The notes: a model not told the origin generated them from the sequence alone. Positions 40,735 to 57,545 are shown, counted from the stretch's first letter. The stretch is 64,000 nt of DNA from Basidiobolus meristosporus CBS 931.73 (GCA_002104905.1 MCFE01000017.1:186001-250000); one strand, 5' to 3'. Program-made: numbers and translations.

Positions 40735-41124
40735 ATGCTGTTTACATTGGCTACTCTTCTTTTGAGTTTGACCGCGGTCAAGGCTGCTTGTGATACTTTC
40801 CAAATCACCAATCCTGCTCCCTCGCCTCAAGCGCTTGTCTACCGTTCCGGTCGGCCACTTACCGTTTCCTGGGACATCGGATCATCTACTGTCAACCAAA
40901 TCACTGGCGTGAATCTTGCCTGGGCATATGCAGAGAGCGACACCTCCTCCATGGCCATTAGTAAAATCATCACCTCTCCACTGCAAGCCAGTCAACGCTC
41001 CGTCGCCCTAACACTGCCTACAAATGCTCTTCTGCAAGCATCCTATTATTATGAACTTTATGTCTCCACTGCTGAGGGACAAACGTGCTACTTCAAGACC
41101 CCCTCTTTTTACATCCGAGACTGA
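40735..41124 (+). CDS. Small secreted protein (129 aa, 2 Cys), Ig/Kre9-N-like beta-sandwich pattern
   Basis: Signal peptide MLFTLATLLLSLTAVKA, FQITNP...YRSGRPLTVSW motif, intronless. Confidence 0.65.
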   Translation: MLFTLATLLLSLTAVKAACDTFQITNPAPSPQALVYRSGRPLTVSWDIGSSTVNQITGVNLAWAYAESDTSSMAISKIITSPLQASQRSVALTLPTNALLQASYYYELYVSTAEGQTCYFKTPSFYIRD

Positions 41125-41728: not shown

Positions 41729-42050
41729 TGTTGTGAGAGTCTTGGTGATATTTGAGGTGATTGGGAGAACAGATAGATTATATGATTTTCATCTAATGAC
41801 TTGGTAAGTTAAAAGAGGTATTTATGCTTGACATAGCTTTGACACTAAAAATTCATACAGTATATTTAGGAAGGTTCTAAGAGTATGTATGCAGCATTTT
41901 TGGGCTTTTGACTAGCATCAAGAATTTTTATATACTGCATACTTAACAATTTGGTGAAAGTACTCTAAGTAGATCCCAACAAGGAACTTGGGCAAGAAAT
42001 ACTAAGGCCCATACACTTTAATATCAGTGACTAGGTGTACTTATCAAACT
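41729..42050 (-). mobile_element. Solo LTR of the same family, strongly degenerate
   Basis: TGTTGTGAGAGTCTTGGTGATATTTGAGGTGATTGGGAGAAC matches the LTR end, with weaker similarity further on. Confidence 0.7.
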
Positions 42051-42062
42051 TATATCATTCTT

Positions 42063-42410
42063 TGTTGTAAGAGTCTTGAAGATATTGGAAGTGTTTGGGA
42101 GAACAAGTAGATTATGTGGCTTTTACTTAATGATTTATTGAATGTAAATTAGAATTTATACTTCTACTTGGTCTTGGAATAACAAGAGCATATAATATGT
42201 TTAAGAAGGACCCAAGAACATGTGTGCAAAGTTTGGGGCTGTTTGGACAGCTTTGAGAATTTTCATGTTCTAGGTGCCTGATATTTTGGTGAAAATATTC
42301 CAAGTAAATCCCGACAAGGAATTTGGTCAGTATTCTCTAAGATTTGTAGGTAATGATCCAAGTGACTAAGTTAAGTGAATATTTAGATGGTATTCCAAAT
42401 TTTTACAGCA
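42063..42410 (-). mobile_element. Solo LTR of the same family, full length (348 bp)
   Basis: TGTTG...CAGCA, colinear with the reverse complement of 62706-63055. Flanks TTCTT / TTTTT may be a decayed 5-bp TSD. Confidence 0.9.
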
Positions 42411-44469
42411 TTTTTAACATAAGCTATTGGAAACTCAATTGATTCTTGTAATTGGCTAGTGGACTTGAAATTAATATCAAATCATCCCAAGCCAATCTTC
42501 ACAAACAGGGGAGAAACTGCACTTCCACAAAAGTTTGCTTGCAGACTTATCTAGTGGGCAATTACGTACACTTGAAGGTCTAATTGTTTAGCTTAGGCTG
42601 CTGTTAATAGTGGTCATTGTATCTTTATTCTATTTTCATACTATATCTACAGGTTGGAGATGGTTATCAGATATTTTTCTCGATTCTGAGGGATTTTGGG
42701 AGTAATCAAGAGTCAATAAGCATTGGACATATCTTTCCATGACCTTCCTCAGCACATTACAAAATTGCAAATCAATTCCTACCGTAGTGTCAATATATTA
42801 ACTCATCCGTAATAGCGCTGGATGGTTTGTTTCATTGATTCTGTCAAAATACAATCAATCATATATAAAATTCAACTTGGGCTTTAACTTTCGAAAAAAG
42901 TGGGCTTTAAGATGATATTGAGTTACTGAATGAAATGTATCCTCATCATGCACAAAATATGGAACCTAGCCACTGGTCTTCTAGCAAGTTATTAGCAATC
43001 CAAAATGTTTGAGACGATTGGGCGTTGCTGAGGCATGATATGTACTTGCTGCTTTATCAGTCTATAATAGCCGTATATATTGTAGAGTGTCATAAAGCCA
43101 CTTGGTTGTTTTTTGATATTTCCACCATTCTGAGGAGAAAGAATACCGATACTTGCTGTTGTAAAATCCACATGAATGGATTGGAAATCGTTTTAAGCAT
43201 AGTAGAAAATACCAGACTTCATGATATAACTACTGAAGGTAAAGTACTTTTCAGTAATTCCATAACCCCTCAAAATTGATCAATTTTCAACAAATCAACA
43301 GGTTATTAAATTGTAAGATCGGAATAATTATTTGCAACAGAGTTTACCAAAATATGGATGGAAAATTGCCATGAAAACAAATCGATGGCTGAATCCAATG
43401 TTACGAAACATGGGCTAAAATTGATTTCAAACTAAATTCGTGATTTGGTAATTAAAAACAAAATATGGGTTAAATTACATTGACTAGAACAGCTTTGCAT
43501 AATAACCGCCGATACTTCAAAGGGGGCTCATTGAAGCAGTCACTTTGAACTTATGATATGATCAGGAATTGGTGATCTTACGCAGTGAATACCTGGTAAT
43601 ATCAAAATTAAATGTAACTCGATGCTATAGAAAACACTCTGGTGGATGTGGGCAAGGGTGTTAGTATATCCGTCGGGTTTCGTTTGGACGTATGAAATCG
43701 CGATAGTGTGTCACTACATTTAGTCAAATCGGTGTGGCTTGAAAGTTCTCCAAGATCCGTTGAAGGAGGACTAGTTCCGCTACGCTGCATCGTCGAAAGT
43801 GGATTAGGAATAAGGAAGTCGCAGTCCAAGCATTCCTCACCAATGTTGGAGTTGCCGTGTGAGATCTTATGATAGTTCCAAGTTGTAGAAATGATATTAG
43901 ATGGGATATCAAGTTCCAAAGCAATCTAGAGCGTGGTAGTCTAAAGGACTAATCAGACCAGGTGGATCTGAGGGGTTTGAAATACCCAAATCAGGTTAAG
44001 CTAGCTCATTGGCAGACTGTGCCAGTGGCCACTACAAAGTACCAGCCATCAACCTCTTTCTAAGTGCCGACTACCGTGCGAGTTACCGGTAATGGTCCCA
44101 CTCCAATGTAACCCAGACATCTCCAAATGAACAGAAAATGGAAAGGTAGAGTCAAGGGAGCATTGGTTGGCCCATTCAAATAGGCAATCAGACTTCGAAC
44201 AGATAGCGCATTTGTATGAGAATAGATAATGAAAACTAACAACGAATTGGATCATTTGAGATACTACAATGGCTTTCCCACTGCTACATTAGAAATCATC
44301 CCGCCTATTGACACCATACCTTATGTGGGAATAGATTTGCAAGCTGAATTTGACTTCAAAGTGATTCCCAGTGAGGTATTCGAAATCCAATACTATAACA
44401 CAGCCATGTTGAGTCAATCAAAACATTTATTTAAAGTACGAACAGAATACCAGTCAGTTCGTATTCACT

Positions 44470-45204
44470 TCAGGCCCAAGTGCACACCACACTTCCGTGA
44501 TCATCTTTGCATACGGTACCTTGGGCGCATTGCTCACGTTCAACGATGCCATCAGCACATACTTCAAAATCCGCAGAGAGACCAGGTTCGATGCATCTGC
44601 TTTGGAATTTACAGAAGGAGGGTGCCGTGGGAGTAGAGGTGGTGGTAGAGGTAGCTGTAGGGCTGGTCAATTGAGCTTGCTCACTTGTGCTAGGAGATGG
44701 GTGAACACTAGACCTCAGCTCGGAATTTGATTGATTAACGTTGATGAGCTGGTTATTACCTTCACCATCGCTCTCACCATCACATGGCACATAGTTCCAG
44801 GTGATATGGACACGGCCTTGCACAAGTTCAGCAATGTGCTCAAATGCTGAGGGGCTAAGGTCAAGTGAGCCTTCTTTGCAAGATGGGCATGTATCGACAA
44901 TCTGCACCTTGACACTCCCCTTGGGACCATGAACCATGGCACATTTAAAGCATGCTGGACTATCACTGGGATTAGCGTACTCGCCAAATTGTGGCGCGTT
45001 CATGGCAGCAATCAACTGACTAGATGTGGATACGATCCCACAGGAGCCCAGCCCTGGGGCGAAGTATGTGCCATCTCCGGAGAACGACTCGCGCTTACTG
45101 AAGAGAAGACCAGCTTCGGCATGAACAGGAGCAGCGGTTACCTTGGAAGCGAGGAAGCAGACAGCCAATGTGGCGGTGGAAGCAAGGATTCGGAGAGCGG
45201 TCAT
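44470..45204 (-). CDS. Secreted expansin/loosenin-like DPBB (RlpA-like) protein with S/T linker and CBM19-like module, paralog 1
   Basis: Signal peptide, KR (Kex2) site, FSGDGTYFAPGLGSCG, IAAMNAPQF, VQIVDTCPSC, GSLDLSPSAF, C-terminal CAQGTVC..CTWA. Confidence 0.88.
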   Translation of the reverse strand: MTALRILASTATLAVCFLASKVTAAPVHAEAGLLFSKRESFSGDGTYFAPGLGSCGIVSTSSQLIAAMNAPQFGEYANPSDSPACFKCAMVHGPKGSVKVQIVDTCPSCKEGSLDLSPSAFEHIAELVQGRVHITWNYVPCDGESDGEGNNQLINVNQSNSELRSSVHPSPSTSEQAQLTSPTATSTTTSTPTAPSFCKFQSRCIEPGLSADFEVCADGIVEREQCAQGTVCKDDHGSVVCTWA

Positions 45205-45906
45205 GATAGCGATAGGTTAAAATAAGGTGACTTTTCTTTTGATAGGGTTTGGAAAACTAGTGATAATGAGTGTTAAGGTACAAGACATCTCTAGTCTTTA
45301 TAGTCCAACGCATCACATACAAGCGAATCTTGCTGGTCAGTACCCGACTCACTTGCTCCCAATTTTGACTTGCGTTGGACCCAGTGACGTGCCCAAAACG
45401 CCTCCTCTGAAGCCCGTATAACTACTAAAAGAATATATTTAAGGGACCCATCTTTGCTAGCCTCACCACCATATAATAGATTACTTTATACAAGGTAGAG
45501 TACATTCATGAATACAATAAAAGAGTAAACCAGCCTTAACGATCGATTCGATGATCAGAAGATTCCCTTGGAATGCCGACCCAAAAATAAACCGGCAAGC
45601 ATCGAAGTTAAGCATAGGCTATACGTGCAAATAAGACGAATTCCCGCCACCAAATTTGGACCCAGGACTTGCTCAACCAAAGAAAAAAATTGACGAATTT
45701 CGTTGGACTGGAGTTTCCATTTGGATAACTAGTTGTGATGAGAATTGCCTTTTTTGTCCTAGTCGGGACATTGCCTAGAATCCCCAAGGACCTGACCCGC
45801 ATTTATGTTCACCAAAGATCTAACCAGCATATCATAGGATATTAAAGCATTTATTGATATAGAAATAATTATTAGGGGGAATAGTCAATGATATAGCGAA
45901 GTTGGT

Positions 45907-46725
45907 TTAAGCCCAAGTACAAATGATGTCTCCGGCATCGTTCTTACACACTGTGCCTTCAGCGCACACCTGTTGATCGATCTCTCCGTTGATACATGTT
46001 TCGAAAGCACCAGTTAGTCCAGGATTAACACAGCGTCTCTCGAAATGACAGCTGGAGGATTCGAGCAGCGTGCTCTCATTTTGACTGATTTTGTTTGAAG
46101 GTACAAGTACTGGTGTTACTTTCTTCACCTCAGTCTGAGTAGCTTGCTGTATGGTTTTGGTTACCTTCTCTACCTTAGTCTGAGTAGTTTGGTGGGTAGG
46201 TTTAGGATGCTTATTTACGACCTTGGTTACTTTGGGTGTGGACTTTTTGATTGTGACACTTGGGGCATGGCTTACAGTGCTAGTAGAACTACTCTCCCCG
46301 TTGCAGGGTACGTAGCTCCAATCGATATGAACACGACCCTGCGCAAGGTCAGCAATGTGCTCAAATGCAGCAGGGCTAAGGTCAAGCGAACCTTCTTTGC
46401 AAGATGGGCATTTATCGACAATCTGTACCTTGACACTCCCCTTGGGGCCATGAATCATGGCACATTTAAAGCATACTGGACTATGACTGGGATTAGCGTA
46501 CTCGCCAAATTGTGGCGCGTTCATGGCAGCAATCAACTGACTAGATGTGGATACGATCCCACAGGAGCCCAGCCCTGGGGCGAAGTATGTGCCATCTCCG
46601 GAGAACGACTCGCGCTTACTGAAGAGAAGACCAGCTTCGGCATGAACAGGAGCAGCGGTTACCTTGGAAGCGAGGAAGCAAACAGTCAAGGTAGCGACGG
46701 AAGTAACAAATCTGAGACCAGTCAT
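45907..46725 (-). CDS. Secreted DPBB-CBM19 protein, paralog 2 (K/T/V-rich linker)
   Basis: Same architecture as paralog 1: GDGTYF, VDKCPSC, LDLSPAAF, C-terminal CAEGTVC..CTWA. Confidence 0.88.
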   Translation of the reverse strand: MTGLRFVTSVATLTVCFLASKVTAAPVHAEAGLLFSKRESFSGDGTYFAPGLGSCGIVSTSSQLIAAMNAPQFGEYANPSHSPVCFKCAMIHGPKGSVKVQIVDKCPSCKEGSLDLSPAAFEHIADLAQGRVHIDWSYVPCNGESSSTSTVSHAPSVTIKKSTPKVTKVVNKHPKPTHQTTQTKVEKVTKTIQQATQTEVKKVTPVLVPSNKISQNESTLLESSSCHFERRCVNPGLTGAFETCINGEIDQQVCAEGTVCKNDAGDIICTWA

Positions 46726-48538
46726 GATGGATATGAAAGAAAAATATATTTGTCGTTTGGTAAATTCCTGTTATCAAAACTAGGAAGGTTAATTGTGAGG
46801 TTACAAGGAGCGTCAGCGCAACACTTTTATATGTGTTGGTGACTCTGGTTGGATGGCCTCATGGCAGTCACGTAGACCTGGAACTCGTACATTTTACTTG
46901 AGCAGTTTTCATGATTGCCTCTTAGTGTAGGGGTATATTGACATGCCCTCAGCTCACATCAGCCTTGTCATTAGTTTTTCCCACTTTTCACATTCCCTTT
47001 CGCTCCTATGAAGCCTCCCCTGGTCAGGCTGCGGGCCAATGAGGGGCCTCCATATCCCTGGTTTTTTCCAGTACGATACATATGGTAAGATTGACATGAA
47101 AAGCAGTCGAAGTTCATTTAATTTTGATTCTTACTTGGTAACCTGGTTGCATACCCGGCAAACTCAGCTGCGTGGCTTCCAATCAACATGTCGATTTTTC
47201 GCATGGTATTTGGTAATTCGATCCTCCGGCAAGACTGCTGTTCGTTACTACTTAGCAGTAGATATTTTCCTATTGGAGGAGGCGGACTGCACATGATACC
47301 CGTGGGCTCTCTAACACGCGAACCTTCAAGACATTTGCTCTGGTACAGCATAATTCGATTTTGCCCACGCGGTCACTAACGCGAACGATTTCTGGAATCT
47401 TTGGAGAGGGATTTGGATTTTCATCTCTAACCAATCCTTCCCCTCTCGTTCTAGTTTTCTTGCCTAAACCAGAACCGATGGTTGACTTGGTTGAGAGTGC
47501 ACACCTTTTTTGCCTTTTCAGAAACATCAGCGCTTACTCTTATGGTTTACGCTTATATTGCTTTAGATACGCAACAAGCTACACCTCGGCGAGTTTCTAA
47601 TGGATGTGCGTTACGCATTATGATGTTATATTTGATTTGGGCTCATGGTAGAGCGGGCAGGCTGTAAACGATAGATGGCCTGCTAGTAATCGACTGAAGG
47701 TGAACTGGCCAACATGCTGCAGATGTCGATGGGACAATGACAAAGATAGTCATACTGATCCATGATCGGTTGGGCCATATACATATTTGATCTACTAGTT
47801 GATCGCTCAAAAATGTCTTCAACACATACTTTATTAAAACATACACACAACTTGAATGGCTTTCGATAGGGAAAAGACGCAACTGCCGTCGGCCGAAGTA
47901 TTTTATTCATATATCTCCGAGTATGTTGCCCAGCTTTGCGTAAGAAAAGTGACAGGTGGATATCCAACATGCCGTTTGATTTACTTCATAAAAGGCATAT
48001 CAGAGCGATACCTAGCATACGTTTGTCAGCAGTTCGTACTTCCAATGATGGTACCAGTGGATGGCCGTGCTGCATGGCACAGAGGCGTGGCAAAGTAGGT
48101 TGCTTCTAATAGGTCATTTGTTTTCCATTTAGAGGGAACTTTAATCTGGGCATGTACCCGACAGCCACTGATTTCTTGGAACTTGAGTGGTGTCCTGGCA
48201 ACCAGGGGTTGCCCATGAGCAACAGAATGTTCCATCTAACTGAGCCCAGATAGGTGGTGGATAGGAGGAATATTTTACCACGGAATCATATTCCCTTCTA
48301 GAATAGAAGGACCATAAACAGCTGGGATAAATCAATCATGAACTTATGGGATCGTGGGAATTTTTTTTATTTTTTTTCAATTTTTTGGAATCGTTGAGGC
48401 TGGTCAGTCAGCAACAACACCAGTGATTGTCAGAATTTAACCAAGTTGTGAAGAATCCAGCTCTATGGAACAACTCACTTAAAATGCCAATCGAGGTGGT
48501 GTGGATGAGCAAACCTTAGTCAATCGATCTATGGTTAC

Positions 48539-49306
48539 TTAATCAGCCCAGGTGCAAATAATATCACCGAGGAGATTCTTGCAGACAGTACCAGAGGCGC
48601 AGCTTTGAGTAATGGCCTCGCCGTTAACGCAGGTCAAGTACTCAGGTTGAAGTCCGGAGCTGATGCACTTTCTTTCAAAGTCGCAGGCACTGGAAGCGGC
48701 AAACTCGTTGCTGGAGGCAACGGTAGGGACGACGGCACGAGTCGAGGTGGTGGTAGAAGCAGGAGCAACAGAGTGGGTGGTGGTAGGAACTGGAGTCTTG
48801 GTGGTGGAAGTAGGCTTGACAGTTGAGGTATGGGCAGCAGGGGTAGTCTTAGCAGGAGCAGGCTTTTCTTCATGTTCAGAGGAACCATCACAGGCGACGT
48901 AAGTCCAAGAGATTGGAACACGGCCTTGAGCCTCTAAAGCAATATGGTTGAAGGCAGCAGGACTGAGATCAAGAGAACCGAATTTGCAGCTGGGGCATTT
49001 GTCAACGATCTTAACCTTGACAGATCCCAATGGGCCAGTAACCATAGCACAGCTATAGCAAGCAGGACTATCACTGGGATGAGAGTAAGCACCAAATTGA
49101 GGAGCATTTATAGCAGCGATCAATTGATCAGCGGTGTTAACATTTCCACAAGCACCGAGACCAGGAGTGTAGTAAGTACCGTCACCAGAGAAACTACCAC
49201 TGCGCTTGCTGAGGTGAATGCCAGCTTCACCCTTCATTGGAGCAGCGGAAACTTGTGAGGCAACAAACAAAATGGCCAGGGTAGAGAAATACTTAAGACT
49301 AATCAT
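48539..49306 (-). CDS. Secreted DPBB-CBM19 protein, paralog 3 (T/P/A-rich linker)
   Basis: Start MISLKYF at 49306. SKR|SGSFSGDGTYYTPGLGACG, VDKCPSC, LDLSPAAF, C-terminal CASGTVC..CTWAD. Confidence 0.88.
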   Translation of the reverse strand: MISLKYFSTLAILFVASQVSAAPMKGEAGIHLSKRSGSFSGDGTYYTPGLGACGNVNTADQLIAAINAPQFGAYSHPSDSPACYSCAMVTGPLGSVKVKIVDKCPSCKFGSLDLSPAAFNHIALEAQGRVPISWTYVACDGSSEHEEKPAPAKTTPAAHTSTVKPTSTTKTPVPTTTHSVAPASTTTSTRAVVPTVASSNEFAASSACDFERKCISSGLQPEYLTCVNGEAITQSCASGTVCKNLLGDIICTWAD

Positions 49307-49699: not shown

Positions 49700-51050
49700 A
49701 ATTGGCGCAGGTAGTGCTTATCCATCGCTATAATAGGGAAAACAACCTAGGCTCGAATCAAATAACTCAGCATCTTGACCTGAACTTCCACTTGACCATG
49801 GATTAGATTTCGGTTGTGGTTGTGGCTTAAAGGAAGGGCTTAGAACAATTAGGAATAATGGATTGACAGTGGAACCTATCCTGCGGTGTAGCGTCTTCTA
49901 CTTGTGGACAAGAGGTTCCTTGAGGTGTTTGTCAATGAGACGGGAATTTGAAGGATTGGCTAGCAGAATTCCTCGCTAGATTCCAATATTCACATCAACT
50001 CTGTGGGTAAACAATATCCCTCAAATCTAAGATTTGTTTGTTTATTTTTCATGAAATCGACTCGGATTATATGGAAGCAACCTGCCAATATTGGATGGAC
50101 AATTTTTCATGGATTCAGCATGAAATTTAGCTTTTAGTCTTGACAGGATTTGGCATCTTTGTTGACATCGATAGGATTACTTTTATGGGACGGAATTCAA
50201 CCAAAACCATGGTTGAGTTATCAGTCCGCATCATTCGTTTATGGATTTGTTTTGACCTGCAGAATGGATGATTGCTATCGTTGGCACATTCCATTTCCCC
50301 AATACGTATGCAAAATCTCCATTCATGCGTTTGGAATCCTCTGGAAGATATCCCGTCATGCATTGATAGGTGTGCATTGATGGAATTTTTTCTCACCCTG
50401 TCGGATGAACTATTATGGTCGGATTACTCTGTTAAAGGTTGTATTACGAAAACTCCAATTTTGGCCAAGGGTAAGTGCGGTCATGATAGTTGATGGAATC
50501 TTGGGGATGATAGTAGTTATCTTGATTAAATTTCAATTAGCAATTGTGCTTATTTTGGTATTCGTTGATAGAATCTTGGGGATGATAGTGGATTTCTTGA
50601 TTAAATTTTAATGAACAATAGTGCTTGTTTTGGCATTCATTGATTACTGATCTGGAGTCATCAATGCTGTGGCTTATTTCTAAACTCCTGTGCAATTTAT
50701 TCATGAGAACGCTGTTAAGAAAGTTGAAGGAATCTTGGTTACATTTAATCACACCTCAACAGAAATGTATGATCAGGTATGCATTTCCCTCTGAAAGAAA
50801 AACATCGTAATGCGGTGCTGTCTGATAATACTTCAATACTCAGTTTCTTAATTACTCTACAAGAACACTGATATAGATTGGTGGTCCAGATCCATACTTG
50901 AGCAAACATAGTTTATTGTTGTTAACCCTTCACAGAGCGTTGCAAAAATCGATTATAACCTAAATATTTATGCAGCGTATTTGTCAAGTACATACAATCA
51001 AGAAATAGTGCCTTTGCTGTGATTCTAAAATTCCTGGATTTTGCACACAT
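49700..51050 (-). pseudogene. Probable decayed ORF of unknown family with an internal 75-bp tandem duplication at about 50490-50640
   Basis: Long near-open minus-strand frames broken by single stops. The repeat unit encodes about 25 aa (INEYQNKHNC-LKFNQ-I-YHPQDS). Confidence 0.3.
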
Positions 51051-51150
51051 ATTTCGAGGTCTTTCAAAATTATAATAGCATCAGTCAATTTGTGGATTTT
51101 GCTTGCAGCCGATATATCAATTATTAAGCATCCAACCCAACCTTATTTCG

Positions 51151-51477
51151 TGTTGTGAATTTTGTAATTACACCTTGATATTCATCTGATTTATTCACTT
51201 AGATCATAGTCTACAAATCACAGAGAATTCTGGCCAAATTCCTTGTTGGAATTTTCTTAGAATGTATTCACCAAAACATCAGGTACCCAGAACATGAAAA
51301 GTTGTTAAGTTGTCCAAACAGCCCAAACTTTGCACATATGTTCTCGAGACCATCCTAAGCATGCCCTACGTGTTTGGTTTGTCAAGATCATGTAAAAGTA
51401 TTAATACTACTTTTACATTCAATAGATCAATATGTGAAAACCACATAGACTACTTGTTCTCCCGAACTTATACAACA
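51151..51477 (+). mobile_element. Solo LTR of the copia family, internally deleted
   Basis: TGTTG...CAACA, colinear with 62706-63055. Flanks TTTCG / TTTCC are a 4/5 TSD match. Confidence 0.88.
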
Positions 51478-52757
51478 TTTCCTTCACTAAAGAGGATTAG
51501 TAAATATACTGCATACGTCTCAAATCATGCTTTAGCTTTTGTTTGTGCTTGAAAACTTGTTCTTTTTCTGCGAAAGTTGACTCTCAGGCTGTAAAAAGTG
51601 AGCATTATCTGAGCTTTCATATATCTTAATATCTCACTAGCAAAAAAATGATTGTAAAATTTGAAGGTAATTACTTTTCTTTACCCAACCTGATAATGCC
51701 TTCATTCTCATACTCCTGCATATTATAAGTTCAATGAATATCTTCAATTTAGGCATAACACTCAAGTAGAGCTTGGGTACAGGACACTGCAAACTAACTG
51801 AAGAATAGGCAGATAGGCAAGTCCTGTCAGTATACTGACATATAAGTTCGAAATACATTGCAAATTAGTACAGGATATTAGTAAGATTGCAGAATCCATA
51901 GACAGCTATGAGAATGGTTGAAAATATGCTCCAAGGATTTACCAATATTATCTTTAGTACATATATTTGCTGGATCTCATCAGAGCACAAAATGAAAATC
52001 AACAGAATGTCAATACAAACAAAACCAACAATTATAAACAAAAATAAAGACTGCATTTAGGAATAATACTAAATAGACTATTTGGGCCTACATATTCACC
52101 ATTCATGTCCAGAGTACTCACACAAATTACTTACATTATAGCTAGGTGTGCACAACAGAAAATTTTTGGAATGGAATACTATCACAAAACTGATGAAAAT
52201 GTATGAATACCATCAAAAAATCCATTGCTTAATAAATGGACTATTGAACTAGAAATAATTTCTCAATATTCTGGCCTTTCTCAGTAGAATTAGAATATGT
52301 TGGTGATTGGATCAGTATGCTAACTTGTAGATTACTTTGTCCTCTGATGGAATATTAAACTGAAGGTGTGGACGTCTTCGGGAAGTGATGAAAACGATCA
52401 CCGATTTCAAACAAACTGGCAGCGGCCCCATATGCATATAAATAAATATGTGTGGCACTACTTCGTATTTAAACTTTGTATAACATACAAAACCAATAGT
52501 AATTAGCACTAAATTAGTTAATCACAGCCTCCAGCATTTTGAGCATATTATATTCTAAAACCTACAGATAAGATACGTGAATCTCTACCAGGGTGAAGCC
52601 AAAAAAATGGATATAAATTAGGTTTATTGATATCTATGAAGTAAGGAGATGTTGGATCTAGTGCGACAGGGCAGGTGGTAATGAAGAAGTTATGTTTGGT
52701 TCCCGGACAAAAAAAATCCCGTCCCCTTCGACTCTATAAGAAACAGGTGAGGGTTGC

Positions 52758-55700
52758 TTAATCACTGTCGGTGTCAGGTTCCTTGGGGGCACCGGTAGGG
52801 TCCGAGAGCCATTTCAGATGTCTCTCTCTACGGCGAACCTGTTGCGCCTTCAGCTCGTTTCTGGTCATCTTCTTCTTTTTCTTCTTGATGACCGGAGTCT
52901 TTGTTTCTGTAGCATCGGCGAAACTCTCCTCATTGACGGCGGCGTTTCCTTTCTTCGTCACCTTACCAGCTTCCACATGCCATTGCTCCGGGCAGAGCGC
53001 ACCAACAAACTCGTCATTGTGGGAGATCATAACCACCGCACCTCCCCAGTCACGAATGGCAACTGCCAAACCACCCAGACTATCTCTGTCCAAGTAATTG
53101 GTAGGTTCATCCAAACAGAGCAGATGTGGCTTAGACCACATGGCAGCGGCGATGACCACCTTGACCTTCTGACCACCACTGAGTCCGGCAATCTCGTTGT
53201 GGTCCGCAATATCCCCGTCTAAGCCAATATCCTCGAAGTGCTTACGAATTTCGGATGGCTCCAAGTTACGATAACCAAGACCCTCCGCACTGGCCACATG
53301 TTCATCGAACTGGAGCACGATCTTGGAGAAGCCGAGTTTCAGCAACTCCTCTCTTGGAATTCTTGTGTTGTGTCTGTGGTGATATCCAACCCACTTGACC
53401 TCGTACTGGAAGGACTTGTCCAATTTGGTTCTTCCAATGATACACTAGAAAATATTGATCCCGTTAGATTTGGGGCAGAGGTGTCAGCCGGAAAAATGCT
53501 TTCTTACCTCGATCTTACGTTTCTCTCCCTTCACCTCAACTGGAACCTCCATCTGCTTGAGATCATCCTCGTCCATGACACGGGTGGCCTTTTCCAAGAC
53601 CTCTCTGTCATAACCTTGGCGATATCTCCATTGGATATATTGGTTGGGGGTCTTTTCAAGATGACGCTCCAAATGATGGAATGCATGCTGGGCAACATAA
53701 CCCACACGAAGGTTGGGGTGCTTGTTGACTAGACCTTCTTGGGGGATAATTTCACCGGTGAGGAGCTTGACGATGGTTGATTTACCCGCACCATTGGGTC
53801 CAAGGATGGCCACGCGCGATGAAAGAGACAAATTCAGGGACACATCGGTCACCGATGGCTTGGATGCCTGAGGATAGGTGTAGGATACACCGGCCATACG
53901 GATGATGGATTTGGTCTTGGACTTGACTCCCTGCAAGAGGCCAGGGTTGGGGAACTTGAATTTCACGTTACTAGCGGTAAGGGTGTAATACGACTTGGCT
54001 TCAGGTCGGACTTTGACAAATCTAAGAAACTCCATGATTAGATGACGTAGGGTTACGACAGTAGACTGTGTTACTTACTCGGCCAAGTTTCCTTTGTAGT
54101 ATGCGAGCTTCTTGGTCTCATAGTGAATAATGTCGGTAGTGACATTGTCGAGGAAGGAGGAGTCGTGACTGACAATGATACTGGTGACTGCCTTCTGGGA
54201 TTTGAGGTAATTCTCCAACCAGGCGATGTTGGCAACATCGAGATGATTGGTAGGTTCGTCCAACAGAAGAATGTCTGCATTAATCAGAATGGCCCTGGCA
54301 AGCTCCAACTTCATCTTCCATCCTCCTGAAAGTGACTTGACAGCATTCTTCTGCATCTCGGCGGAAAATCCGACACTGCTCAAGGCTTGAGCGACCTCCT
54401 CGCGACTGACGTGACTCAACTTGGGGTCTATAATGAAAAATGTAAGATTTACGAAACAGTCCCAAATACAGATAAGGGCGTAGCCTACCATTAGAGATGA
54501 AGTCAATGATAGGGAGCATAGCATCCTCTCCTTGTAAAGAATGCTCAACAAACACAGTTTTGAGCTCATCTTGTGAGGGGAACCCTTCCAATTTGCCATT
54601 GGAGATGGCTCGCATAAGCGTAGATTTACCCGCACCGTTGGCACCGCATAGACCATATCTGCGGCCACGGACTAAACGAAGGTTGGTGTGATTCAACAAC
54701 ATCATACCACCATAAGCCAAGGAAAAATCGATATCACACAACACTTCGCCCTCATCCTCGTCAGTATTATCTCCAGAAGCAAACTTGACCTACAAAGATG
54801 GGTAGGTCAACTATCTATCGTGACTTTGTGCCGTAAGAGTTCATTTTTAGATACCTTGTCAACCTCCAGGTAGTGAGCTAGGAGCTCTTCAGTAATCTCG
54901 GTGGCAAGGCTTTGATCGATAAATGGCTGCAAGTATGGTGCAACAAGCTCATCTAACCATGATTCCTTGGAGAATTGACGGCTTTCTGTCAATTCAGCAA
55001 TGATTGCAGCCAAGTATTGCAACTGGGTTAGCAAGTTCTTTTCGAGAATAATATCCTTCTTGGCAATCAAGGTCTTCAACTGATCCAGAACCTCTGCACG
55101 CTCGGCTTGAACATTACGATGGGTAGCTCCTTGAACAGAGCCAGCTGCCTTGACGAGGGTGGCACGAGCTTGCTGGTCAAGGCACTGACTTCAGGGGATG
55201 ATGTCTCGATAATACGATCCAATCCTGGCAAAAGTTCAGGCAGATACTGGCCTGCCTCTTTAGGGTTGTTAACAAGACGGCACAAGTTGTCGACAATGAT
55301 CACCGTTTTACGGAGAACTGCTTGGGAGCGATTGCTAAGTGCTCGTACCAACAACGGAATAAGAATGGCCAGGGTAGGTCCTAATAGTCAATAAAAATTC
55401 TGATTAAGCAAACTGTACAAGGTACATATAACTACATAACACATACCGTTAACATCAGCGACGAAAGTGGTCGATGATAGCTTGCTAATGGTAGCAGGAA
55501 CATTATCTGGCTCAGCCATACACTGAACCAGATCTGATACAAATGGCATGATATCTTGATTGTGCACTACACTGACAATCTCTGTCATAGCCTTAGTGGC
55601 AGCAGCAGCAACCTATAATTCATTGGGGGGGGTATTGGTCAAGTCTCTGCCTTCATTCACTACAGCAAAAGTTATTTAATTACCTCAGGCTTGGTATCGT

Positions 55701-56259
55701 GCAAGCATTCAGACAGAGGTGGAACAATAGTCACCAAGTTAGCAGCAATCAGATCAGAAGCCTTATCTGGGATTTGACTGACGAGCTCACACGCGCCAAC
55801 CTTGGCTTGCCAACGAGCGTTGCCAGACAAAACCTCGAAAAGAGCTTCCAGGAAAGTAGTTGCCAGGCCCTCAGGAGGAGCTAGCTGGAACATTTCCTTG
55901 GCAGCCAACTCAGCAGCCTCTCGAACAACTTCACCCTTATCAGCGTAGGCACCAAGAATCAAAGGTAGAAGGGATATGAAAAGAGGCTCACTAGTGCGGC
56001 CCATGGTACGGAACAGGGATTGGAAGCCAATCAGACCAGATTCACGGGCAATTCCAGATTTCTTGTTCTTCACAGCTGCAGTATAACTTTCTATAACTCC
56101 ATACCGGTCAAGTCCAGCTACGCCGTCTTGCTTCAGCGTAGCAGCAACTTTATCGGCATATTCGGCACATTCCTTGGAAGTTTCGGCGTTGTAAAGGCTG
56201 TTTAGTAGCTCCTTTACTTCCGCGTCTCTACTTTCGTACAAACTTCCGTCAGCCGTCAT
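52758..56259 (-). CDS. NEW1: New1/Elf1 (eEF3-like ABCF ATPase), multi-exon
   Basis: HEAT N-terminus, two ABC cassettes ([27 protein letters not shown]; [17 protein letters not shown]) and a chromodomain insert. The tail [26 protein letters not shown] is typical of New1/Elf1 rather than Yef3. Confidence 0.88.
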
Positions 56260-57545
56260 AGTCAATAGAATAATACAGACTTGTGTAAAGCCGGAATAAG
56301 CAACCCATTTGATCTGGATATATATTTATATGTCTTGGGGAATAGTTGTAAAAGAAATCCCCTTCTGGACTGAACTCGGATGATGATTGGGCTGACCTCT
56401 CATATAAATAATTTGCACAAGCATCGATAAGGTAAAATAGCCAATTATAGAGCAGTGACATGACTATGAGATGAATGATGTAAGGTTGGTTTTTTTCATC
56501 ACGTTCCCAAGGCATTCGTTAAAAGTGACCAGAAAGCTGTTCGTTTATTACTGCAAATAACCAGGAACACCCGATGCTAAACATTAAAGTGAGTGTTCTG
56601 TTTAGATGTGTAGGCGTCCTGAAGCCGAAGCCAATTTTGGAAAAAAAAATATTGAAAAAAAATCAACATCGCAGTCACGATCTAGATACTATAAATTCTT
56701 GATCAGCTCCTGATATGGATTAAAGCTCTACATATCTGTAATATCGAGTATATTTCTCAAGTATGTGAATTAAACAACTTGCCATGACGATTAGCCAGAA
56801 GTGTTCACATTCTTGCATATTTCGGAAAATCTGAATTGTGGCAAGTCTGTCTAGCAGCTGATAACTATGATGTGTCACATGAATGGATAACGTAAACCCA
56901 AAACCATAGCTTGATATTCCACATGATATTGGTTGTTTCTCTGCCTCCAAATCTTTTATGTATGGCGCTTTGGAAGCTGTGTGAATGTATATTCCCTCTA
57001 TTAAGAAGATAACATAAAGCTCCCAAGTTTAACCAAATAGAAGGTGTTGTGTACACTCAGGTTATTAATTCTGCTTACCACCAGTGCAATATCATAACCC
57101 ACATAGTCATCCAAATAGTGAAGAAAACAAATAACTAGTGACGCAATTTTGGTAATATATAAACACCACTAAAAAGCCCTTCCCAACTTTTCGCACATCT
57201 TTCCTAAACCTTTCACAGCGCAACACAGTGGCATCGATATTAGACGTGAGAGAGAGAATAATGGCTTTGGATTTCATTTATTTCAAATAATCATTTCATC
57301 CAACTTGGGATAAGAAAATGTCCAGAGCTTCATAGCTTTGGACAAAAAAGACATGTTTTTGTATGTACTACACGGTGTAACATTGCTCACTAAGAAGGCA
57401 TTGAGAAGTCACCGAGTTACATCATTGCCACAATGATAGTTGCATGTGCATTGATTTAATAAATCATCCCACACATGCCGTGGCTTTTGCATTGACCAGC
57501 CCGCCTTATAAATAATGCCCCATTTTTTGAGCCTAGCACATTATC

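Follow-up and report, generated by a model that had tools for sequence, protein, structure and literature searches.

Organisation of the gene array

We analysed a 64,000-nucleotide stretch of the genome of Basidiobolus meristosporus CBS 931.73 (GCA_002104905.1, MCFE01000017.1:186001-250000), referred to here as the window. Positions 44470-49306 of the window hold three tandem genes for predicted secreted proteins, in which an expansin-like DPBB domain is joined by a stalk to a C-terminal tail of chitin-binding type. The three open reading frames (ORFs) are all on the minus strand, and the two ends of the span coincide exactly with the stop codon of gene 1 and the ATG of gene 3. Gene 1 (g1) occupies 44470-45204 and encodes 244 amino acids (aa), gene 2 (g2) occupies 45907-46725 and encodes 272 aa, and gene 3 (g3) occupies 48539-49306 and encodes 255 aa from the ATG at 49306. 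The Pfam domain DPBB_1 was found above its gathering score in all of them (E = 3.3e-9, 1.6e-9 and 4.1e-9, respectively), and g3 also gave a match to CBM_14 (E = 0.018). In full-length alignments, g2 and g3 were 68% and 54% identical to g1. Because the ORFs are uninterrupted and align end to end with homologues from Basidiobolus ranarum, the three genes can be regarded as intact and intronless. A sequence-only reading of this DNA, made before our analysis, had described three intronless co-oriented genes, and both properties were confirmed.

Each protein consists of four segments. The signal peptide and propeptide are encoded by 45091-45204 in g1, 46612-46725 in g2 and 49202-49306 in g3. At the N-terminus, a hydrophobic core, whose best 12-aa segment averages about 2.0 on the Kyte-Doolittle scale, precedes A-A-P; we read this from hydropathy as a signal peptide. 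A K-R pair (R-R in P0010) is located 4-5 residues upstream of the GDGTYY motif in 10/10 family members aligned, and it is also present in P0143-P0145. Judged by its sequence, this Lys-Arg pair is a Kex2-type site, and the mature protein is predicted to begin with the acidic DPBB domain. The signal peptide and KR propeptide site named in the sequence-only reading are therefore consistent with the hydrophobic N-terminus and the conserved K-R pair.

The DPBB domain is encoded by 44782-45090 (g1), 46303-46611 (g2) and 48890-49201 (g3). The ratio of nonsynonymous to synonymous substitution rates (dN/dS) of this domain was 0.06-0.17, which indicates purifying selection. The stalks that follow are rich in Ser, Thr and Pro, and that of g2 is also rich in Lys. 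They comprise an acidic Ser/Thr stalk of 56 aa in g1 (44614-44781; isoelectric point, pI, 4.1), a basic Lys/Thr-rich stalk of 84 aa in g2 (46051-46302; pI 10.0) and a Thr/Pro stalk of 68 aa in g3 (48686-48889; pI 7.0). No alignment could be made between them. This agrees with the earlier description of three very different linkers. The proteins end with tails of 47-48 aa containing six invariant cysteines, encoded by 44473-44613 in g1, 45910-46050 in g2 and 48542-48685 in g3, with the stop codons at 44470-44472, 45907-45909 and 48539-48541, respectively. A tblastn search of the window revealed no further copy or fragment of these genes, except the tail of an AA11-type gene described below.

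The AlphaFold2 model of g3 reflects this layout. The DPBB domain (residues 36-140) was modelled with a predicted local distance difference test (pLDDT) value above 90 and the tail with a value of about 93, whereas the stalk remained below 50. According to the model the stalk is disordered; it is probably O-glycosylated, and it varies freely between the copies.

The DPBB domain

Three motifs, GDGTY(Y/F), VDxCPxC and LDLSP, are found in the DPBB domain, which we call the head. When the sequence of the DPBB region was compared with solved structures, the best match was the Streptomyces expansin Ss_EXLX1 (9ms5; E = 1.4e-16, or 3.9e-16 when the full-length protein was searched). Further matches were SPI, a papain inhibitor of Streptomyces (5ntb; E = 8.4e-11), a Clavibacter expansin (4jcw; E = 3e-10), Talaromyces EXLX1 (E = 5.4e-10) and the loosenin PcaLOOL12 (9ce9; E = 5.9e-10). 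Foldseek searches with the model of the head recovered the same set. The first match was again 9ms5 (E = 1.5e-10, 41% identity), and the second was SPI (E = 2.1e-10, 35% identity, template-modelling (TM) score 0.84). PcaLOOL12 (TM 0.80) was also matched, and then kiwellins, plant expansins, GH45 enzymes, barwins and cerato-platanins. A search of the ESM Atlas returned DPBB clusters alone. Residues T12, D71 and D82 of BsEXLX1 correspond to T44, D102 and D113 here, and each of the three is kept in 46/47 aligned homologues. Sequence and model thus support the assignment of the head to the expansin-D1/loosenin type of DPBB domain, and the expansin-like head with GDGTY, VDxCP and LDLS motifs that had been proposed earlier is borne out by the Pfam match, the motifs themselves and the similarity to expansins and a loosenin.

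The head is acidic, with a pI of 5.1-6.0. Among 20 fungal expansin-related proteins tested in a previous study, the acidic ones bound chitin preferentially (PMC12779228).

A fungal expansin-related protein with xylan-cleaving activity, GtEXPN_133317, was reported in 2026. Its activity needs Asp87 and also Asp25, which stands directly after a Thr-Trp-Phe motif (PMC12846793). In our alignment Asp87 corresponds to D113. The equivalent of Asp25 is position 47, which is Thr in g3 and Ala in both g2 and g1. Asp occurs at this position in 19/46 homologues, including the paralogues P0003, P0006, P0007, P0009 and P0010. By the Asp25 criterion the three window genes would encode non-catalytic proteins, and the lytic-transglycosylase-like activity offered as one option in the sequence-only reading is weakened.

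The C-terminal tail and its relatives

The tail was studied with a profile built from four tails of the window, those of the three DPBB genes and that of an AA11-type lytic polysaccharide monooxygenase (LPMO) gene. This LPMO gene is located at 1090-2019 on the plus strand and encodes 309 aa with similarity to PDB entries 7p3u (E = 4.7e-31) and 4mah, an AA11 structure (E = 1.2e-14). The protein starts with a signal peptide, and His1 follows the predicted site of cleavage; further on come a Pro/Thr/Lys linker and, encoded by 1861-2016, the tail.

When 1.84 billion representatives were searched exhaustively with the profile, 70 proteins were recovered at E ≤ 1e-3. We scanned 64 of these 70 and found CBM_14 on 20, CBM_19 on 13, GH18 on 3 and GH19 on 1. 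Matches with a single C-terminal copy were mostly CBM_19, at or near the threshold, as in the GH18 proteins P0086 (Massospora) and P0118. Single C-terminal tails were also found on the B. meristosporus AA11 protein P0078 and on many short Basidiobolus proteins. Matches with several repeats were CBM_14 proteins of the peritrophin-like kind. In UniProt, members carry the name 'Chitin-binding type-2' (P0002 among them) or 'Carbohydrate-binding module family 19'.

Profile-profile comparison with hhalign gave a probability of 98.8% over 45 columns between the tail and Pfam-positive CBM19 domains, a score that is inflated because the segments were delimited by the hidden Markov model of the tail itself. 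The corresponding values were 93.7% between the tail and CBM14 repeats and 93.0% between CBM19 and CBM14. The tail alignment also shows a cysteine pattern that is common with CBM19 domains. Against solved structures, the four-tail profile matched best a squid beak chitin-binding protein and the insect chitinase 3w4r, and a wider tail profile matched best 3w4r, the chitinase 6g9c and human chitotriosidase. These top matches are individually non-significant, and all of them are CBM14 chitin-binding domains.

The isolated tail (53 aa) was modelled with five beta-strands and a pLDDT of 91. In an exhaustive structural (VIA) search with this model, 18/48,161 chains reached Z ≥ 2, and 8/18 were of CBM14 type. 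The latter included Avr4 (Z 4.3, solved with chitin bound, and 3.9), Der p 23 (4.3), Blo t 12 (3.9), Der f 23 (3.2), the CBM14 of CHIT1 (3.1), tachycitin (2.9) and Aplysia EHEP (4.5), which we take to be built of peritrophin-A domains and have counted on that basis. A word-index search with the tail alone found only its own cluster, which reflects a limit of the word index and is no measure of rarity.

On these sequence and model data, we assign the tail to the CBM14/CBM19 chitin-binding group as a divergent module of CBM19 type, and binding of chitin by the tail is very likely. The earlier description of a CBM19-like tail is upheld by the hhalign result and agrees with the fold matches to CBM14 modules such as Avr4 and Der p 23, low as their Z values are, even though the Pfam score given below is under the cut-off.

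The tails of the array form a distinct subfamily with the start C-x-F-E/D-R-R/K-C, which is common only with Basidiobolus AA11 tails. In the tail tree, the DPBB-family and AA11 tails were placed together, apart from the generic CBM19-like tails of Basidiobolus (support 98/96). This grouping suggests, at the level of sequence, that modules have been exchanged between the DPBB and AA11 gene families.

The same CBM19-like module also occurs in proteins with many repeats. P0077 of B. ranarum (517 aa) contains 7 tail-like repeats, and P0080 and P0142 of Smittium and Furculomyces (about 1050 aa) contain 6 CBM19-like repeats. They have no Pfam-recognised catalytic domain, and from their sequences we regard them as Zoopagomycota counterparts of peritrophin-like proteins.

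Distribution and origin of the family

The closest matches of the array proteins were all from B. meristosporus CBS 931.73 and B. ranarum. We found about 15 genes with the full layout, all of them in Basidiobolus. The members in B. meristosporus are g1, g2, g3 (public model P0002), two genes fused in P0003, P0143 and P0145, and those in B. ranarum are P0004-P0010 and P0144. Among the proteins recovered by the tail profile, only Basidiobolus proteins also carried a DPBB domain.

Some of the public gene models appear to be imperfect. Three conserved internal stretches of 48539-49306 are missing from P0002 (ORX63315.1), the public model of g3, probably as false introns. P0003 (ORX96405.1) is two adjacent family genes fused in one model. 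In two homology searches, the public proteins recovered were at most 62% identical to g1 or g2, which may therefore lack annotation or form part of some other gene model. That the tandem arrangement exists elsewhere as well is suggested by contigs in common, by neighbouring locus tags and by the fusion in P0003.

The homologous DPBB domain of other early-diverging fungi, among them Coemansia, Paraglomus and Mucorales, lies at the extreme C-terminus, after a low-complexity extension. The closest fungal DPBB homologues outside Basidiobolus were 57-66% identical over the aligned part. In the DPBB tree, the Basidiobolus family formed a clade (88/90) within the fungal sequences, and bacterial EXLX proteins fell outside. 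We tried and rejected a recent bacterial origin on the ground of this tree and of the identities, which were 60-66% to fungal DPBB homologues compared with 41% to Streptomyces. Because the family nests among single-domain DPBB proteins and not among two-domain expansins, the tail was added to a single-domain fungal DPBB lineage. On this topology we rejected the proposal that a chitin-binding module had replaced CBM63.

Fusions of the same DPBB subfamily to other chitin-binding modules were also found. LysM-DPBB fusions occur in Umbelopsis (P0040, P0157) and in metagenomic sequences (P0025, P0158), and a fusion with CBM18 (hevein-type) occurs in Planoprotostelium fungivorum (P0044). They are on separate branches of the DPBB tree, which identifies them, as far as sequence can tell, as independent and parallel events. 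P. fungivorum is an amoeba named for feeding on fungi.

Possible function and alternative explanations

We favour, with modest confidence, the explanation that the array encodes secreted, chitin-tethered and probably non-hydrolytic wall-loosening proteins. It draws on sequence comparison, structural models and analogy with characterised proteins. After export and Lys-Arg cleavage, the mature protein would start with the DPBB head. The tail would fasten the protein to chitin, and the flexible stalk would let the head sweep the adjacent polysaccharide surface. The groove of the head (T44, D102, D113) would then loosen the packing of chitin or chitin-glucan without hydrolysis, in the manner reported for loosenins and ScExlx1. 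Either the wall of the fungus itself, during growth or spore formation, or foreign chitin, such as that of insect remains and other fungi, could be the target. We slightly favour the own wall; the grouping of the tails with AA11 tails would favour substrate targeting over own-wall anchoring.

Published work provides several precedents. ScExlx1 binds chitin and raises the release of N-acetylglucosamine by chitinase (PMC4372547). The PcaLOOLs show much stronger binding to alpha-chitin than to cellulose and alter the density of the mycelium (PMC9888185), and expansin-like proteins have been implicated in wall extension of the fungal stipe (PMC10282164). In addition, the groove is conserved in more than 45 homologues and dN/dS of the head is low, which points to a specific biochemical activity of the head.

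Several results weigh against this explanation. The g3 tail was subthreshold for both Pfam families (CBM_14, PF01607, E = 0.006, 17.2 bits with a cut-off of 22.1; CBM_19, PF03427, E = 0.024, 15.1 bits with a cut-off of 20.1), and the tails of g1 and g2 searched alone matched neither. Foldseek with the isolated tail gave no match at E ≤ 0.001 (best E = 0.13). The structural matches of the tail model were weak, with Z at most 4.7, although low values are to be expected for 53 aa and chains of CBM14 type were enriched among those with Z ≥ 2, and the inflated hhalign score belongs here too. The conserved motifs of the head are no proof of a carbohydrate role; SPI keeps identical motifs, and we therefore rejected motif conservation as evidence of expansin function. 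Finally, when PcaLOOLs were fused to CBM63, the weakening of cellulose filter paper by the wild-type proteins was apparently reduced, so a tether need not aid loosening (PMC9888185).

The proteins could also act as a kind of swollenin for chitin. The tail would dock the head on crystalline chitin and the head would disrupt its packing, which would boost AA11 LPMOs and GH18 chitinases. We regard this as possible, though doubtful.

The similarity to SPI suggests a different role, which we judge to be unlikely. The head would block papain-type proteases and the tail would park it on the fungus's own wall, giving a wall-anchored cysteine-protease inhibitor that could protect the fungus inside animal guts or from proteases of insects or amoebae. 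SPI is the second-best structural match of the head, and Basidiobolus inhabits herptile guts. A fungal DPBB effector of Rhizoctonia, RsRlpA, inhibits papain and binds plant cathepsin B (PMC7662947). By sequence, however, the head is closest to a true expansin D1 domain, with 41% identity. The DPBB subfamily is moreover fused to three unrelated types of chitin-binding module, and the tail clusters with AA11 tails. Because of these fusions and this clustering, a carbohydrate-directed head fits somewhat better.

It is rather improbable that the proteins are generic wall or surface proteins, in which the tail replaces a GPI or covalent wall anchor and the head serves to display antigens, to mask the fungus from immunity or to adhere. 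Avr4, a fold match of the tail, is an example of a CBM14 protein that shields chitin, and the long low-complexity extensions on the DPBB proteins of other early-diverging fungi are typical of wall proteins. The conservation of the groove across the homologues and the low dN/dS of the head are against such a role, which also overlaps the own-wall version of the wall-loosening explanation.

Least of all do we expect a chitin-targeted catalytic DPBB protein, a hydrolase or lytic transglycosylase like GtEXPN_133317, RlpA or MltA that acts on chitin, chitosan or wall glucan: D102 and D113, the latter being the acid common to GH45 and expansin-related proteins, are conserved, real activity has been published for GtEXPN_133317 and five paralogues carry the Asp25 equivalent, but the window genes have Thr, Ala and Ala there with no other candidate base identified, and most tested expansin-related proteins, including PcaLOOLs on chitin, yielded no lytic products.

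If the proteins do act as a swollenin for chitin, the independent LysM, CBM18 and CBM19-type fusions would indicate that this widespread DPBB clade of early fungi has walls containing chitin, rather than plant cellulose, as its native substrate.

History of the array

The 5' halves of g1 and g2 are much more similar than the rest of the two genes. By blastn, 44771-45207 in g1 and 46292-46728 in g2, both on the minus strand, were 90.8% identical over 437 nt (positions -3 to +434 of the coding sequence), a tract that covers only the signal peptide and the DPBB domain. The flanks, stalk and tail showed no similarity. Nucleotides 61-240 of the two coding sequences are 100% identical, and the identity decays on both sides. 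The synonymous divergence dS was 0.27 in the DPBB domain, whereas synonymous change in the tail was saturated (proportion of synonymous differences, pS, 0.84; 58% nucleotide identity).

The phylogenetic trees point in the same direction. The heads of g1 and g2 were sisters in the DPBB tree (98/100). The g2 tail grouped with those of B. ranarum P0005 and P0008, with the g1 tail outside that group, so that the two trees conflict for g1 and g2. We explain this pattern, on the basis of the sequences, by gene conversion, which has recently made the 5' halves of the two genes alike but left their stalks and tails distinct. The two DPBB domains inside P0003 are identical, and this suggests gene conversion at a second locus.

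For g3, both trees showed orthology to B. ranarum P0004 (96/88 for the head and 96/94 for the tail). The split between g3 and g1/g2 is therefore older than the two species, and the array appears from these trees to have arisen by old duplications. We also compared the 300-nt flanks upstream and downstream of the genes in search of shared promoters, and found no similarity beyond that of shuffled controls.

Genomic context

About 42 kb separate the AA11 gene from the array, and this interval holds genes for a sugar transporter, TatD, a cyclin-like protein, zinc-finger and GATA factors, RPB5 and transportin. Other neighbours of the array are the genes for EF3, an NmrA-like protein and a transporter of the major facilitator superfamily (MFS). 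No chitin-related gene cluster was found around the array among the neighbours identified in the window. We also rejected a gene cluster that includes the AA11 gene, since the two loci are separated by unrelated genes and have the module alone in common. The idea that the array works with the AA11-CBM19 LPMO is therefore only partly retained: the tail of the AA11 protein is of the same subfamily, but the distance and the lack of a cluster do not favour it.

Some further features of the region were noted. The EF3 gene (translation elongation factor 3) is at 52758-56265 on the minus strand; it encodes HEAT_EF3_N, two ABC domains and a chromo-like insert, it is split by introns over several ORFs, and we regard it as an ordinary housekeeping gene of fungi. 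The array is flanked by AT-rich, ORF-poor DNA, with a GC content of 0.36 at 42001-44000 and 0.35 at 50001-52000, compared with values near 0.45 elsewhere. At 50489-50644 there is a direct repeat, the period of which is about 75 bp. Just upstream of the AT-rich flank, a 129-aa ORF at 40735-41124 on the plus strand has a signal-peptide-like N-terminus and no Pfam match, and it may encode a small secreted protein.

Significance

What microbial expansin-related proteins act on in nature is still a matter of debate. Chitin is bound better than cellulose by several of the fungal proteins, but only through weak, charge-dependent contacts. A natural fusion of such a head with a dedicated chitin-binding module gives genetic evidence that walls containing chitin are a real target of this DPBB clade, and the fusions to LysM and CBM18 that arose in parallel elsewhere lead to the same view. 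The family also offers ready-made constructs, with three types of stalk and with heads that have or lack the Asp25 equivalent, for questions of tethering, catalysis and synergy with AA11 and GH18 enzymes. These questions are relevant to chitin bioprocessing and fungal wall biology. Since the family is restricted to one lineage, the gain is incremental; it is a variation on a known theme and leaves the overall picture unchanged.

Comparison with known systems

No published characterisation of an architecture combining DPBB with CBM19 or CBM14 was found in our incomplete literature search, in line with the sequence-only reading, which knew of no characterised protein of this kind. The novelty implied there holds in part. 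We found no report of the DPBB-CBM19 fusion in that search, but PR-4 proteins and the LysM-DPBB and CBM18-DPBB fusions already pair a chitin-binding module with a DPBB domain. Both binding and loosening of chitin by fungal expansin-related proteins have likewise been published before (PMC4372547, PMC9888185, PMC12779228).

Class I PR-4 proteins and prohevein combine a hevein CBM18 with Barwin, a domain of the DPBB superfold. Both they and the array proteins thus contain a cysteine-rich chitin-binding module and a DPBB fold, and Barwin and sugarwin are among the fold matches of the head. The PR-4 proteins differ in the reversed order of the modules, in the CBM18, in the Barwin subfamily and in being plant antifungal defence proteins. 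Pfam Barwin (PF00967) was below its cut-off in the array proteins (E = 0.073), and Chitin_bind_1 was not matched.

SPI and RsRlpA belong to the same DPBB subfamily, but they are single-domain, protease-inhibiting proteins with no chitin module. The tails resemble the CBM19 and CBM14 modules of yeast and fungal GH18 tails and of peritrophin-A, Avr4 and CHIT1, being likewise six-cysteine domains of about 50 aa with predicted beta-strands. They differ by lying below both Pfam thresholds and by forming a distinct subfamily together with the Basidiobolus AA11 tails.

Swollenin (Trichoderma SWO1) follows the same principle, in which a small cysteine-rich fungal CBM brings an expansin-type module, by way of a glycosylated linker, to a crystalline polysaccharide. 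In swollenin the CBM is an N-terminal CBM1 for cellulose and the D2 domain is kept, whereas the Basidiobolus proteins have a C-terminal CBM19-type module and no D2.

The canonical expansins (BsEXLX1, Ss_EXLX1 and ScExlx1) have a homologous D1 domain, in which the equivalents of T12, D71 and D82 are kept, and the logic of a head plus a CBM is common to both. Pfam found no CBM63/Expansin_C domain in g1-g3, and the D2 of canonical expansins is accordingly missing. The short rigid linker of canonical expansins contrasts with the long disordered stalk of the Basidiobolus proteins. With such a stalk and no CBM63, a continuous D1-D2 binding face is impossible.

The loosenins and single-domain EXPN proteins (LOOS1, PcaLOOL12 and GtEXPN_133317) are likewise secreted fungal DPBB proteins, with the same T-aromatic-aromatic, DxCPxC and (L/I)D(L/M)S motifs, and members of the loosenin group bind chitin better than cellulose (PMC9888185). 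Identity to PcaLOOL12 is about 29%. The Basidiobolus proteins add a stalk, a chitin-binding-type module and a Kex2-type propeptide, and are thus not single-domain proteins. The array proteins are therefore expansin-related DPBB proteins, and are neither canonical expansins nor strict loosenins.

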